Positions 545 to 63,430 of a stretch of 64,000 nt of DNA are shown here, piece after piece. Each line of letters begins with the position of its first letter. Position 1 is the stretch's first letter. The stretch lies in NCBI GenBank assembly GCA_977030845.1, contig OZ365109.1:42036001-42100000 (forward strand), given 5' to 3'. This stretch comes from Fimbriosthenelais zetlandica (Eukaryota). The notes under the pieces were generated by a model. That model made no database searches and was not told the DNA's origin. It saw only the letters and a list, made by a program, of their open reading frames with translations. The position numbers were made by a program, and so were the translations under genes.

Positions 545-1104
545 GTAAGTCTACCAGTTCCACTTTCCCGTAAACCTAGCCTGCTATATTATACGGTAAA
601 TGCGATCTGCATGATGTAACATAGCTTACCTGCTAATGATAGCTTTGAATATTCCACACAGTAGTGAGTAGTCTGCCGAGTGAGAAATCTCATGAATTGT
701 TTCAATGGGAGGAAAATTGGTCAAAAAGTTTAAATCAGAGAGAGAGAGCGTGCTTTCAAATACTTGGCTTATAGGCCTATACGGTGTTTGTGGATGATTT
801 TGGCGAGGCAAGGAAATAGAAAATGTCAGTACTGATCAATTGTCTCTGGATATTGATTTCCATTTGCATGCACTGATTTCCATAGATAGGGGCCATAGCA
901 GTAGGCCTATGAAAGCCACAATACTCCTACCTGGCACTATAATATTATGCCTATTGGGAAATATGTTCAGAATCATTCTAATAGACCCACCGATTGAATA
1001 GAATACCGGTACTATAGGCCTATAACAGCTTATCATTTCACAATTAAATTTGTTTATTATCATGAATTCTCATTTTAATTTTTTTCAGAGGTAGGCCTTA
1101 TAAG

Positions 1105-2217
1105 ATGATGGCAGTGGATGATCCAGAAGTGCCGCCCCTTCAGAGGGCGGCGGGGGCGGGTCGCATTGACATCTTACACGAGCTCTTAACATCAACTTGC
1201 CAGGACATCAATCAGCGGAATGACCTAGGTCAGACTGCCCTCCATCTAGCCTGCAGTGGGGGTCATGCTGATGCCACCCACCTCCTCCTCCAGCATGGGG
1301 CTGACCCCAGTCTCAGAGACTTCCGTCATGAGACAGCCCTCATGAAAGCTGCCAAAGGTGGACACCACCAAGTCATCTGCGTCTTCCTCAAACACATTCC
1401 ACAGGGCTTCTCAACTGAGGAGTCAAGGACTGAAAGCATAAAGAAGTTCATCCGCGGAGTCACTGCCAGACCGACCAAAGTGGTACGGACATTATTTAAC
1501 AGGTTCAAACTGAACGGGTCCAAAGGAGAAGGGCAGAGTTACCTGGCACAGTGCGAGAGGGAGGAGGCCCGGGCTGGGTTGGGTCGGTTAGGACCATGCT
1601 GGGAATCTGTCCTCAGAGCCACAGTAGCTGAAGGCCACATGCAAATCGTCGAACTTCTCCTGAGTCACAATATTGACATCAACTCAGGTGACATGAATGG
1701 TGTCACAGCTCTTTCTCTAGCTTCTGGTTACGGCCATAAAGATGTAGTCTCGCTCTTGTTGAGATATGGCGCCAGCACCAACAAGAAGGACTTGGCCGGA
1801 GAGACGCCATTGTTAAAAGCTGCCTGGAGTGGTCACAGTGAGGTGCTCAAACTTCTCCTGGACATAGGGGTGTCTATCAACCAGGCAGATGATGAAGGTA
1901 TGACATCCTTGCATTTCGCGGCGCGTAAAGGCAATTTGAGAGCGGTGCGGCTGTTGGTGGAAGAAGGCGCAGATCTGCACCGCACCACGGTACACCGACT
2001 CACCTACGGTTCGGATTATCCGGTGTTAGCGGGTGCCACGCCCACTCACATGGCAGCTTGGGGTAATCATGGAGATGTCCTCCAATGTTTGGTGAGGGCT
2101 GGGGGTGATGTGGATGCCACTACAATGATGGGTCAGACGTGCCTTCATATAGCTACTGATACTGCCTTGTACTGTGGTGAACGGAGGAGTTCCCGCTCAC
2201 ATGCCCGTCCTAATATG
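1105..2217 (+). CDS. Ankyrin repeat and SOCS box protein (ASB family), coding exon 1 (371 aa, about 9 ankyrin repeats)
   Basis: Repeated G-x-T-A/P-L-H-x-A...G-H...LL ankyrin motifs (GQTALHLAC, GVTALSLAS, GETPLLKAA, GMTSLHFAA, GATPTHMAA, GQTCLHIAT). A donor ATG|GTAGGC at 2218 is phase 0 and joins in frame to 2753. Confidence 0.9.
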
Positions 2218-2752
2218 GTAGGCTTCTTTCATTCATTTATTATGATCGCATCAAGGGCTGTTTAGACAGGATCTGTGCAAGTGGACATGTCCATTCTTAT
2301 GGTAGGCCTATCTGTGTCTAGAATAGAAACCCGTTTTCTGACAACCTCATCATGCTCATGCACTTCATGATGCAGACCAACATGACATGCGGTAGGCCTA
2401 ATAGACGCGTCCACCTGCATGGACCCAAAGGGCTTTCATTGTTTCTATGGCCATTATGGAATCTGGAGAGAAAGTTATTTCAATATTTCCCTATTCAAAA
2501 TCTAGTACGGTACTAATCTTTGAAAAATTCTAGATGAATATGCATTTTCCAATAATTTAATACCGTACACCATATTCAGTGGTTCTCCACCGTTCTCATA
2601 CATTAAGTGTTTCTATTTCCAATAACATAGGGCCTACCATACGTAGACATAATGTCTATGAACATAGCCTACGTAACTTAATGTGGTCCCTCATTTTTAG
2701 GCCTAAAACCTAATTGTTCCATAAGACTGTAGGCCTAAAATATTGATTTCAG

Positions 2753-3355
2753 GAAGGATTACGTGCCCTCCTCCATGAGAGCTGCCACATGAACCTGACG
2801 GACGTGGACGACAACACGCCACTCGACCTCACCTGGACGTTAGGAGGTCATCCACAAGTGGCGCTCACACTTCTCAGTCACGGCGCCAAATTCAGCCAAT
2901 CAAAACTGTCCGACTTCAGGTACCTTCTCCTTGATGACAGCGGGGCTGAGCTTCACTATGATGTCTGCAGGGCAGTCCTTATCTCTGGTAACCATGGAAA
3001 CTTCTCAGTCCCTAACTGCGACGCGCCCATGTTATGTGACCGTCTGACAGCCCTGGGTGCGGTGGACGATTTCTATGCCTGGTTACATTGTTTCATTTTC
3101 ACGCCTCTCCCGCTCAAATTCATGCTCCGGATTGCTATGCGTCAGTGGCTCATCCAGAAGAGAAGGGGCCTTTCCATCAGTAACCTGGTGAAACATTTAG
3201 ATATCCCCGTCATCCTGCAGGAATTCCTGCTGCTTCAGGATTTGGTGAATGTGGTCGCGGATTATGAACATCCTAGTTATTCATGTGATAGCTCCAGTTA
3301 TGATAATCTGTCTAAATCTGGCTGTAGTGATGTTACAGATCATGATGTGGAGTGA
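2753..3355 (+). CDS. ASB-family protein, coding exon 2 (last ankyrin repeat, SOCS box, acidic tail); full protein 571 aa
   Basis: Acceptor TTTCAG|GAA at 2751-2752 is in frame with the 2789 ORF. It completes an ankyrin repeat (..PNM-EGLRALLHESCHMNLTDVDDNTPLDL). SOCS-box-like PLPLKFMLRIAMR...LDIPVILQEFLL follows, then TGA. Confidence 0.88.
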   Translation, partial: EGLRALLHESCHMNLTDVDDNTPLDLTWTLGGHPQVALTLLSHGAKFSQSKLSDFRYLLLDDSGAELHYDVCRAVLISGNHGNFSVPNCDAPMLCDRLTALGAVDDFYAWLHCFIFTPLPLKFMLRIAMRQWLIQKRRGLSISNLVKHLDIPVILQEFLLLQDLVNVVADYEHPSYSCDSSSYDNLSKSGCSDVTDHDVE

Positions 3356-3850
3356 AAAAAATAGATCAAACTAAACGAGGGGTGTATACATGTATGGGCA
3401 AATGGATGGCTAAAACACAACTCAGGGCCATAGCCAGAATTTTCTGGGTGGGGGTGGGGTGGGGGGAACGCAAATCAAGGTAAAACCCCAATTGGAGTCA
3501 TCATCATACACTTCACTTCCGGTCTTCAAGAAGACTTCAAGAAGGCATTAATTTTGTCACTCTAAATCAGACCATATACTTTTCAGCAAAACATATAATG
3601 CTGGCTTGGACTTTGGTTTTGTAGCTATGCAATAAGTCAAATTATTTGCTAATGACTTGACAAACATCAGAACGGGCGTCCCACAGAGGTGGATGATTTA
3701 CATGAATGATGTTCTGGCAGCTAAAAAATCATATTATGTGTTTCAGACACCCACCCCCTTGAATCAAGCGCTGATCAAGAAACGTCAACACCCGTGGGTG
3801 TACTGGAGACGTGGTTGGGGTTTGGGGGGATCATATATGGCTCTGCAACT

Positions 3851-61150: not shown

Positions 61151-62295
61151 TATCCTTTCTCTCATTTCAACATTCTTTTAGCCATTAATTCTTTTTAACG
61201 CTTCATTTCTTATACAGGATGGGTTTCATTTGAATATCCTACATGTGTGCCCATTGGATTCGAGCCTGATGCTGATGAGATTCATATGTATATTACTAAT
61301 TAACCTTATCCAATACATAAGGAAGGAATAATGCTTGCCCTACACCAACCATTCCAACTTATAGACCTGTAATAATTTCGCTTTCTTTTCTTTCAGCTTC
61401 ATTTTATCTCTGTGAAATATTACCACCTTCTTTCATTAAAATAACATTTACTTCTTTAAAGCTGCTTCATTGCAAATTGATTTACTTTCATTTTATTTTC
61501 AGAATAGTAATTAAGGAGTTCCTTTCCTTCTATGCCAGTCTGCTTTGTGTCAAGAACGATATTTGTAGACCACTATTTTCGCTAATGTTTGTTGATTTAG
61601 GTTAATTTGGATGAGGAAAAGAAAGGGTAATTTTCTGCTTGTCCGAGAACTGAATCTGTTCATTGTTTTGGGGTGTTAGGTTGTAGTCTGAAACCTCTTC
61701 TTTTTTGGGAGGGACTGCAAATTTTTGTCAGTGTTTGAAAAAACAAACAAATATTTTTCCAGGTCCCAGGCTCTTGACCCCCAAAACCTGTTATGAGGTA
61801 CTATCAGGTGGTTGGGAAGATTATTGGATATAACCTGATATGACAATGTTTAGCTTCTGACTAATGACGATTACACTTTTATTTCATATATATCAAAACC
61901 TTGGTATGTGCACAATAAAGGTTGGACTTGTTTGTCCTTTTGATTAGTCCTTTAATTATCATTTTCTATTATTGTGTACAATGCTTTACATCTATATAAT
62001 ATTTTACACCTTAATCAATACGATTTTTTTCAGCTCAAGACACTTGCACCTTCCCTGTTCAATTGCATTTCACTTAATAAAATTAATTACATTTAAACAA
62101 TGATAATTCCCAAAACATGGCACTTCTTAAAGCTTCTTGGACGATAAGCATTACTCATTACTCACTCGCTAGCGCTTCTTATTAACAATTACTACTACTA
62201 ACAAATAACTCTGAACAAAATAAATTGTTGCTTTTGCTGCGCTATCCATCTTATTTCGCAGGATTTTAATGATATAAGTTTAATTTGTATTCCAG

Positions 62296-62404
62296 TCAAC
62301 AAATACACACAAGTTCAAAGTACACACCTATGGCAGCCCGACATTCTGCGACCACTGTGGATCTCTGCTCTACGGCCTTCTCCACCAGGGTCTCAAGTGC
62401 GACT
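62296..62404 (+). CDS. PRKCA: cPKC exon 4 (109 nt, C1B: [36 protein letters not shown])
   Basis: Clear C1B consensus. TTCCAG acceptor is phase 0 and matches exon 3; donor T|GTGAGT. Not in the supplied ORF track. The gene continues beyond the window. Confidence 0.95.
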
Positions 62405-63337
62405 GTGAGTACACTTCATTCCCTATTATTACTCTGACCAACGAGTATGCTCTGACCTCGGCAAAGCTTTCGTGTTATACAGAGTTTTGACCTCTCAAAG
62501 CTTTCATTTTTCACCATTATTGCAAATAACAATATGGAAAGATATTGCCAGTACTATAGGGGCTTCTGCAATATTGTCAATATGTCTGTGTGTCTTATGC
62601 CTCTTGCTTTCAACATAATAATGTCGGATGTTTTTGTCTTAGAGCATAATGGACTGATGTTCACAGGACATATCCCTTGTCTATAAATAGGAATTGCTTC
62701 CCACTTCAACAATATACAACATTGGGACTATTTAGTAATGTTACTAAACCACATATCATGTTGATCATCCTGTTTTTAATTGCATATCCCACAAGCAAAA
62801 CCGTTTCAAGTAAACAGCTAGCAGAATATGGCGTGAAATTTACATGACCGTATAAGTTCACGGATTCAGTTCCAGATGATTTTACATGACCCCCCTGTAA
62901 TTTACCCCGACTGGGCAAATCAGGCTAATTAAAACCATTATTACAGGACCCGCCTGTACATTTGAAAGGACATATTTTCAGTGTAGATAACATGACACTC
63001 TTAAATCTGGGGATAACAATAATATAATTATGAATAGAAACTAGTGATGTTGGATGTAACTGTATCTCAATCCATTGTTATAACAGAATATGAGAGTGTT
63101 AGAGTAGAATGAGAGATGAGTTCCCCCCAGCTCCCAATCTCTGTATTGTATAGTGAGATGGGTGAAGTTGATAATGCTGCAGGCCTAGCTGACCCTTGGT
63201 GACCCCTGCTGACCCGGGCTGACATGTCAGTGTGTGGAGGGAGGTATTGTGAGGAGGTGGGGTGGCCGGGGGTGATACTACCATCACTGACACTGGCACA
63301 AACCTGACACTTTCTAATCCACTCTATCTCAGCTTCA

Positions 63338-63430
63338 CTTCCTTCCTCTCTTCTCATCTCCTCTTCTTAGGCCTACTTCCTTCCTCTCTTCTCATTTAAT
63401 TCTCTTCTTACCTCCTTCCTCTCCTCTTTT
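63338..63430. repeat. CT-rich tandem repeat, about 3 x 32-35 bp
   Basis: Unit cttccttcctctcttctcat..ctcttctta; the first junction carries an extra GGCCTA. Confidence 0.85.

Follow-up and report, generated by a model that had tools for sequence, protein, structure and literature searches.

What has written the same eight letters over and over into one stretch of the genome of Fimbriosthenelais zetlandica? The window examined here, positions 42,036,001 to 42,100,000 of contig OZ365109.1 in assembly GCA_977030845.1 (64,000 bases, 38.9% G+C, zero N runs), carries the palindromic word TAGGCCTA, GGCC between two TA dinucleotides, 37 times, from a first start at 772 to a last at 63368. A preliminary description of this DNA had read the word, together with several shorter or similar ones, as accumulated footprints of transposon excision. 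The evidence set out below leads us to consider it slightly better than an even bet that the sites are neutral excision footprints of the Tc1 type, with a recent burst in this lineage.

Expected counts were taken from 100 dinucleotide shuffles, which give 0.97 occurrences of TAGGCCTA (standard deviation 1.04, maximum 5), and from order-1 to order-3 Markov models, which give 0.8-1.3. Recounting returned the same 37 sites as the preliminary description, and the strong excess it reported stands (37 against about 1), though not its assumed background of 36% GC. Only the poly-C word outnumbers TAGGCCTA, which is thus the second commonest 8-mer of the window. GGCC itself occurs 158 times, in 37 of them with TA on both sides, the runner-up pair of flanks being found 4 times. 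Among all 256 palindromic 8-mers ranked by observed over expected counts, the top three are TAGGCCTA, TACCGGTA (4 against 0.3-0.5 expected; 0.47 by shuffles) and TACATGTA (13 against 1.7-3.2; 1.70 by shuffles). The enriched geometry is 2+2 (GG/CC, CA/TG and CC/GG), and no other is enriched among palindromes.

The shorter word TAGGCTA, counted with TAGCCTA as one double-stranded word, is raised about threefold (22 against 7.07 expected, 0 of 100 shuffles as high), close to the earlier figure of about 20. Two parallel series with CAG..CTG and CCG..CGG ends had also been proposed, and these held for their 8-mers, TACCGGTA at exactly the four positions listed before, but not for their 7-mers: neither TACAGTA plus TACTGTA (17 against 9.85; 3 of 100 shuffles as high) nor TACCGTA plus TACGGTA (5 against 3.45; 25 of 100 as high) is convincingly over chance in the window. 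The ten-mers predicted by 3+3 retention do not occur there at all, so that the proposed 3-nt ends give way to the 2+2 geometry, and 6-bp forms are at chance level in the window. Mismatch variants of TAGGCCTA number 26 against 21.5 expected, with an excess of about 10, all transitions; the 7-bp excess of about 15 lies above the yield of decay, all 24 substitution variants together contributing about 5-10. The words start at the positions below (spans in brackets; all unstranded).

772, 902, 1015, 2303, 2393, 2698, 2730, 3865, 4666 (772..4673): nine TAGGCCTA, upstream of an ankyrin/SOCS-box (ASB) gene, in its intron and in its 3' flank
7277, 8811 (7277..8818): two TAGGCCTA
13089, 13323, 13602, 13730, 13801, 14553, 14565, 14780: first half of sixteen TAGGCCTA in the densest field (13089..20189)
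17428, 17451, 17527, 17692, 18483, 18799, 19883, 20182: second half of the same field
23078, 23820 (23078..23827): two TAGGCCTA
31365, 32534 (31365..32541): two TAGGCCTA
46447, 52636, 53553, 57088, 58736, 63368 (46447..63375): six scattered TAGGCCTA
3387, 6302, 6816, 15790, 17434, 17521, 24648, 28319, 42622, 46866, 54396, 57412, 58287 (3387..58294): thirteen TACATGTA
1004, 4508, 14627, 58499 (1004..58506): four TACCGGTA
2665..60795: twenty-two TAGGCTA/TAGCCTA, the 7-bp form, evenly spread

The sites do span 772-63375, as the earlier term 'window-wide' implied, though not evenly: 29 of the 37 lie within the first 24 kb, nine of them around the ankyrin/SOCS-box gene at 1105-3355 and sixteen at 13.1-20.2 kb, where the ratio of observed to expected CpG is raised (0.59-0.87). 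None of the nine falls inside the two exon open reading frames (ORFs) of the gene (P=0.08 given the distribution of TA). The end of a 41-bp tandem repeat directly adjoins the site at 7277, and the site at 8811 comes 9 bp after the GT donor of a minus-strand exon that is thymidine-phosphorylase-like.

Could the sites simply be copies of something longer? The 30-base flanks on each side are mutually unrelated, and BLAST of every site against the window, which is nearly free of internal repeats, gave no paralogue spanning a site. From -8 to -2 the flanks have the composition found around all 5,357 TA dinucleotides; the sole deviation is at position -1, where G is raised (31% against 17%) and C depleted. 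The palindrome ends at eight bases, positions -1 and +1 being complementary in 10 of 37 sites against 26% expected. Apart from the TA, the flanks are generic. A diverged dispersed repeat, or an artefact of assembly or sequencing, draws on nothing but the excess itself; the common flanks that would mark a dispersed repeat or a remnant of a miniature inverted-repeat transposable element (MITE) are missing, and the excess recurs in three independent data sets (the assembly that holds the window, a long-read assembly from ENA, and contigs of two Logan runs). Both readings, repeat remnant and artefact, are effectively refuted.

Instead, TAGGCCTA behaves like six bases inserted where a TA already stood. 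In the ~35-bp tandem repeat at 63338-63444 (+), one unit junction is TA and the adjacent junction is TAGGCCTA (63368). A second case comes from related DNA, traced through the ankyrin exon, for which the search found no identical protein; it led to a relative at 83% (Logan runs, contigs L002 and L003) and to relatives at 58% (ENA assembly ERZ25767047). Contigs L001 and L005 are colinear homologous copies, 84-96% identical, which may be haplotypes, homeologues or paralogues; L001 carries TAGGCCTA at 4474 where L005 has TA, a 6-bp indel with two substitutions nearby. In both cases a duplicated TA brackets the extra bases and a single TA marks the empty form, as in Tc1/mariner footprints. The repeat pair 6440/54210 was uninformative for TACATGTA. 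Members of the word family also share a TA more often than expected (5 against 1.6, P=0.025; 17428/17434, 17521/17527, 53548/53553, 57088/57094, 58499/58505), and such chains, listed next (unstranded), are the expected product of a TA-targeted process that regenerates TA.

14547..14572: TAGGCTTA, one transition off the motif, having a TA in common with TAGGCCTA at 14553, and a further TAGGCCTA at 14565, the starts of the two TAGGCCTA being 12 bp apart
17428-17441 (within 17426..17534): TAGGCCTA and TACATGTA with a common TA
17509-17534: a decayed TAGGCCCA, then two CATG units, then TAGGCCTA
53548..53560: TACTGTA and TAGGCCTA with a common TA
57088-57100: TAGGCCTA and TAGGCTA
58499-58511: TACCGGTA and TACTGTA

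Is such an insertion then kept for a function? TAGGCCTA might be the selected palindromic site of a dimeric factor near gene starts, comparable to the Drosophila DRE (TATCGATA) or to the ZFX-type AGGCCT. The clustering of sites around genes such as ASB and in a CpG-richer stretch would suit this, as would the few mismatch variants in the window and a TAGGCCTA upstream of the ASB start codon both in the window (-90 bp) and in the 83%-identical relative (-97 bp in L002/L003). The upstream flanks of these two sites, however, are unalignable. Five TAGGCCTA sites are common to L001 and L005, two of them intact in both copies and three altered at a single base in one of the copies (TAGGACTA at one site, TAGGTCTA at two), so that 3 of 40 motif bases are changed against 10.9% substitutions in the 100-base flanks. 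With a presence/absence difference besides, this is not the conservation beyond the neutral rate that a transcription-factor or insulator site would display; the motif is unconstrained, and decay as fast as that of neutral sequence speaks against a conserved motif bound by a protein. The preliminary description had named conservation between species with no empty-TA alleles among the findings that would tell against it; decay at the flank rate is the opposite, and one empty-TA allele, that of L005 opposite L001:4474, was found. Extending the L001/L005 comparison added zero sites, and in a second pair, L009 and L010 (96-98.5% identical), all three TAGGCCTA sites are common. A binding site is further contradicted by the empty allele itself, by a site lying where two tandem-repeat units meet and another 9 bp inside an intron, by the lack of any extended consensus (the ZFX-type AGGCCTAG is present in only 7 of 74 half-sites) and by a density of 1.2 per kb, far over any known factor motif. 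We consider a selected site very unlikely.

The excess is not confined to the window. In the ENA relative (82 kb, non-redundant), TAGGCCTA occurs 9 times against 0.96 expected and TACATGTA 8 times against 2.5, and a control locus of Haliotis asinina has no TAGGCCTA in 22 kb. The excess in both the relative and the window makes it a property of the lineage that predates the split of the two species. Densities differ, with 0.58 TAGGCCTA per kb in the window against 0.11 per kb in the relative, and the former, together with the few mismatch variants, fits a recent burst in the lineage of the window. From one pair of diverged copies, one to three new sites would have arisen per ~19 kb at ~11% divergence, which comes, in the dense regions, to an estimated TAGGCCTA insertion for about every 700-2000 point substitutions; the steady-state density implied by this rate would be 0.06-0.18 per kb, near the 0.11 per kb of the relative. 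As a separate observation, a comparison of L002 with L003, one from each run of the 83% relative, shows 9 differences in 1302 bases, of which 4 fall within 110 bases upstream of the gene; noncoding diversity is thus very high, which bears on the possible youth of 'perfect' sites.

The process that would produce these sites is the following. A cut-and-paste transposon of the TA-duplicating IS630/Tc1/mariner-like kind, with ends 5'-GG...CC-3', would duplicate TA on insertion. On excision, its non-transferred strands would be cut within the element, two bases from its ends, as happens in Tc1/Tc3, each flank retaining TA and two element bases, and end joining would yield TA-GG-CC-TA, so that TA would become TA-GGCC-TA by a neutral micro-insertion of 6 bp. 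Alternatively, the self-complementary GGCC tips might anneal in interrupted gap repair and give an identical product. TACATGTA and TACCGGTA may be the equivalent product of families ending in CA..TG and CC..GG. Two new TAs come with each scar, which explains the chains that share one. The process would be old in the clade, being seen at lower density in the distant relative, and would have undergone a recent burst in this lineage, to which the few mismatch variants in the window point.

Where, then, is the parent? Scans of the window for TA-flanked inverted ends, TAGGC...GCCTA pairs and recurrent sequence beside TA-GG gave nothing convincing, and neither a transposable-element protein domain nor a transposase was found among window ORFs of at least 75 aa. 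The search covered ~180 kb, window and relative together, a small sample beyond whose reach genome-wide absence lies. Several candidates were set aside: 14217-17797 (CCG..CGG ends) is not a transposon but a pair of oppositely oriented clusters of one 12-nt motif; 43903-45382 (GGG..CCC ends) is, by our estimate, within chance expectation; the TA-GG ends at L007 19692 are internal to a longer terminal inverted repeat (TIR); and the pair 44079/44721 (TA-GGCC ... GGCC-TA, 639 bp) has only a weak TIR. A fifth, the 1-kb TIR element at L001:16610-17611, missing from L005 (empty site ~18640), had seemed a TA-flanked GGCC parent until three further copies and a second empty site gave a 3-bp TWA duplication.

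The family to which this last element belongs is of interest in itself. Its internal ORF has at least 61 homologous clusters in the same collection, which makes the family multicopy. All eight ends of four copies begin GGC, seven of them GGCC or GGGCC (reference L009:9896-9930); the target duplications are TAA, TTA, TAA and CTA, and the second empty site (L009:9896-11387 against L010:6038-6040) confirms TTA, so that the 3-bp TWA duplication has been checked against the empty sites of both L005 and L010. The copies, 1-2 kb long, have ORFs without a Pfam hit. TWA duplications and G-initial TIRs are features of PIF/Harbinger elements (PMC4482050), and by these criteria the family is of PIF/Harbinger type. 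Its insertion polymorphism between homologous copies indicates recent activity, and it is apparently a currently active MITE family. The window holds one related end.

44681..44721 (-): solitary terminal repeat ending GGCC, beside TAA, with a 14-nt exact match and further similarity to the ends of the relative's family; no convincing partner end was found

With its 3-bp duplication the family cannot simply yield TA-GGCC-TA and is therefore not the parent, and TWA-GGCC-TWA words are not enriched in the window (TAGGCCTT 2, AAGGCCTA 0). Excision in the PIF/Harbinger superfamily is described as largely precise, with reference to work on mPing (PMC4423477). The other polymorphic elements of the relative have TTAA or 4-bp duplications. 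One, a 960-bp TTAA-flanked TIR element with AG..CC termini at L010:4096-5054, missing from L009, is Kolobok-like by the RR..YY rule of PMC9587614 and carries an internal TAGGCCTA at 4847 and TACATGTA at 4974. Another, of 501 bp with TIRs and a 4-bp ATGT duplication (L001:6086-6586), is missing from L005, and a 3.6-kb element with inverted arms of ~1.3 kb beside TTAAG (L005:12104-15677) is missing from L001. DNA transposons are demonstrably active in the clade.

Several points weigh against excision footprints as the source. Neither the 64-kb window nor ~120 kb of the relative yielded a TA-duplicating element with GG..CC ends, such as the TA-flanked GGC..GCC family that the preliminary description predicted, and the extra bases matched no termini of a TA-duplicating element in that sample; the only GGCC-ended family found makes TWA/CTA duplications and is not the parent. 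Filled and empty forms are represented by only two clean verified cases, and a further one, TACATGTA at L001:2491 where L005 is 6 bp shorter, is ambiguous because a 6-bp duplication fits the alignment too. The 7-bp forms, which would be junction variants of a Tc1/mariner element and exceed expectation in the window, do not cluster with the 8-mers (9 of 22 in the first 24 kb against 29 of 37; Fisher P=0.005) and are at chance in 82 kb of the relative. The TAGGCCTA product is unusually uniform against the heterogeneous natural footprints of rice. Such uniformity does resemble the canonical footprints of animal Tc1-like elements. The case made earlier for footprints is supported by insertion at TA, generic flanks, neutral decay, chains and the activity of DNA transposons in the clade; it loses its 3-nt ends, and no parent was found in ~180 kb.

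Two other kinds of process could write real insertions. TA-directed break and repair might do so in the absence of a classical resident TA-duplicating transposon, the writer being a domesticated or low-copy transposase or nuclease, or aberrant PIF/Harbinger-type GGCC events whose tips are captured in repair. A parent missing from ~180 kb and a very uniform product would suit such a writer, as would the co-occurrence in the clade of an active GGCC-tipped family with one end in the window. For the PIF variant, however, simple retention or gap-repair products would be the TWA-GGCC-TWA words whose counts are given above; TACATGTA and TACCGGTA, of identical geometry, fit several families better than one enzyme, and we know of no enzyme that writes GGCC at TA. 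We regard this explanation as doubtful. The second would make the scars junctions of programmed or somatic excision, the excised elements being germline-restricted and bounded by TA, with parents outside the assembly and scars renewed every generation. This would account for the missing parents and for the striking uniformity of the scars in the window, most of them perfect; the neutral-like decay between homologous copies and the site wholly missing from one copy speak against it, and no such system is known in this type of animal; we hold it to be extremely unlikely. That a dedicated TA-directed system of whatever form has written the same 6 bp thousands of times, as a lineage-specific mutational process, seems distinctly unlikely; its possible forms are germline-restricted elements with programmed excision or a domesticated transposase acting with PIF-type GGCC tips.

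The surroundings of the sites offer some observations of their own. The ankyrin/SOCS-box gene (1105-3355, +) stands tail-to-tail with the thymidine-phosphorylase-like gene (~8787-9461, -), and the gene list of a third assembly, ERZ26222911, includes this neighbourhood too. Two opposite-orientation clusters of the 12-nt GTACCGCACGTC (14113-14458 and 17736-18035; 14 matches against 0.83 expected) bracket ~3.3 kb with 7 TAGGCCTA sites; the core of the motif, ACGTGCGG, presumably resembles a bHLH-PAS/HIF-type site. An inverted repeat at 13643-13973, whose 76-bp arms are 93% identical and whose 179-bp loop contains two TAGGCCTA, has ends that are not TA-flanked and is possibly a small foldback or MITE. 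At 24717-24734, TAGCCTA and TAGGCTA 4 bp apart form a near-perfect inverted pair of 18 bp. The commonest 8-mer of the window belongs to poly-C/poly-G runs (CCCCCCCC 45, GGGGGGGG 16; for example 23833-23873), and the relative likewise has 16 in 21 kb. Rfam and tRNA scans of the window found nothing.

If the sites are excision scars, they form a countable and datable log of transposon traffic that would tell at which places, how fast and in what chromatin elements came and went. Excision would then add small insertions near genes at a rate that can be measured, every one of them bringing stop codons on both strands. Should no parent exist, the signature would point to a novel sequence-writing process. 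In either event the clade has DNA transposons from several superfamilies that are polymorphic and apparently active. In the literature consulted, no description of a TAGGCCTA excess was found, nor was a genome met with a comparable abundance of scars.

How do these scars compare with known systems? The Drosophila DRE (TATCGATA), bound by DREF, is likewise an 8-bp TA-NNNN-TA palindrome enriched near gene starts; the sites described here differ in decaying neutrally, in varying by presence and absence, in occurring at a tandem-repeat junction and in being far denser. The PIF/Harbinger Tourist-like MITEs share TWA duplications and G-initial TIRs with the 1-2 kb family of the relative and the window end at 44681-44721, but a 3-bp duplication cannot give TA-GGCC-TA, and they resemble the predicted parent only in their tips. 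In rice, 8 of 94 natural excisions were 'perfect', leaving exactly two copies of the target-site duplication (Roffler and Wicker 2015, PMC4423477); there too the excision of DNA transposons is treated as a source of small indels that can be measured by comparing related genomes, whereas the rice footprints are heterogeneous, with deletions and filler DNA, and in the present DNA a single exact product prevails and shows up as a k-mer excess before any genomes are compared. Tc1/mariner elements are reported to leave footprints of 2-4 bp (PMC7913693), and with those of Tc1, Tc3 and Sleeping Beauty the present sites share a duplicated TA bracketing a few bases, extra bases that are palindromic, as if both inverted ends had given equal bases, and, in the window, a shorter 7-bp form that may be a variant of the main product. 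They differ in retaining GG/CC where CA/TG is usual, in that neither a parent element nor a transposase was found in the DNA searched, and in their number, which makes TAGGCCTA the second commonest 8-mer of 64 kb.

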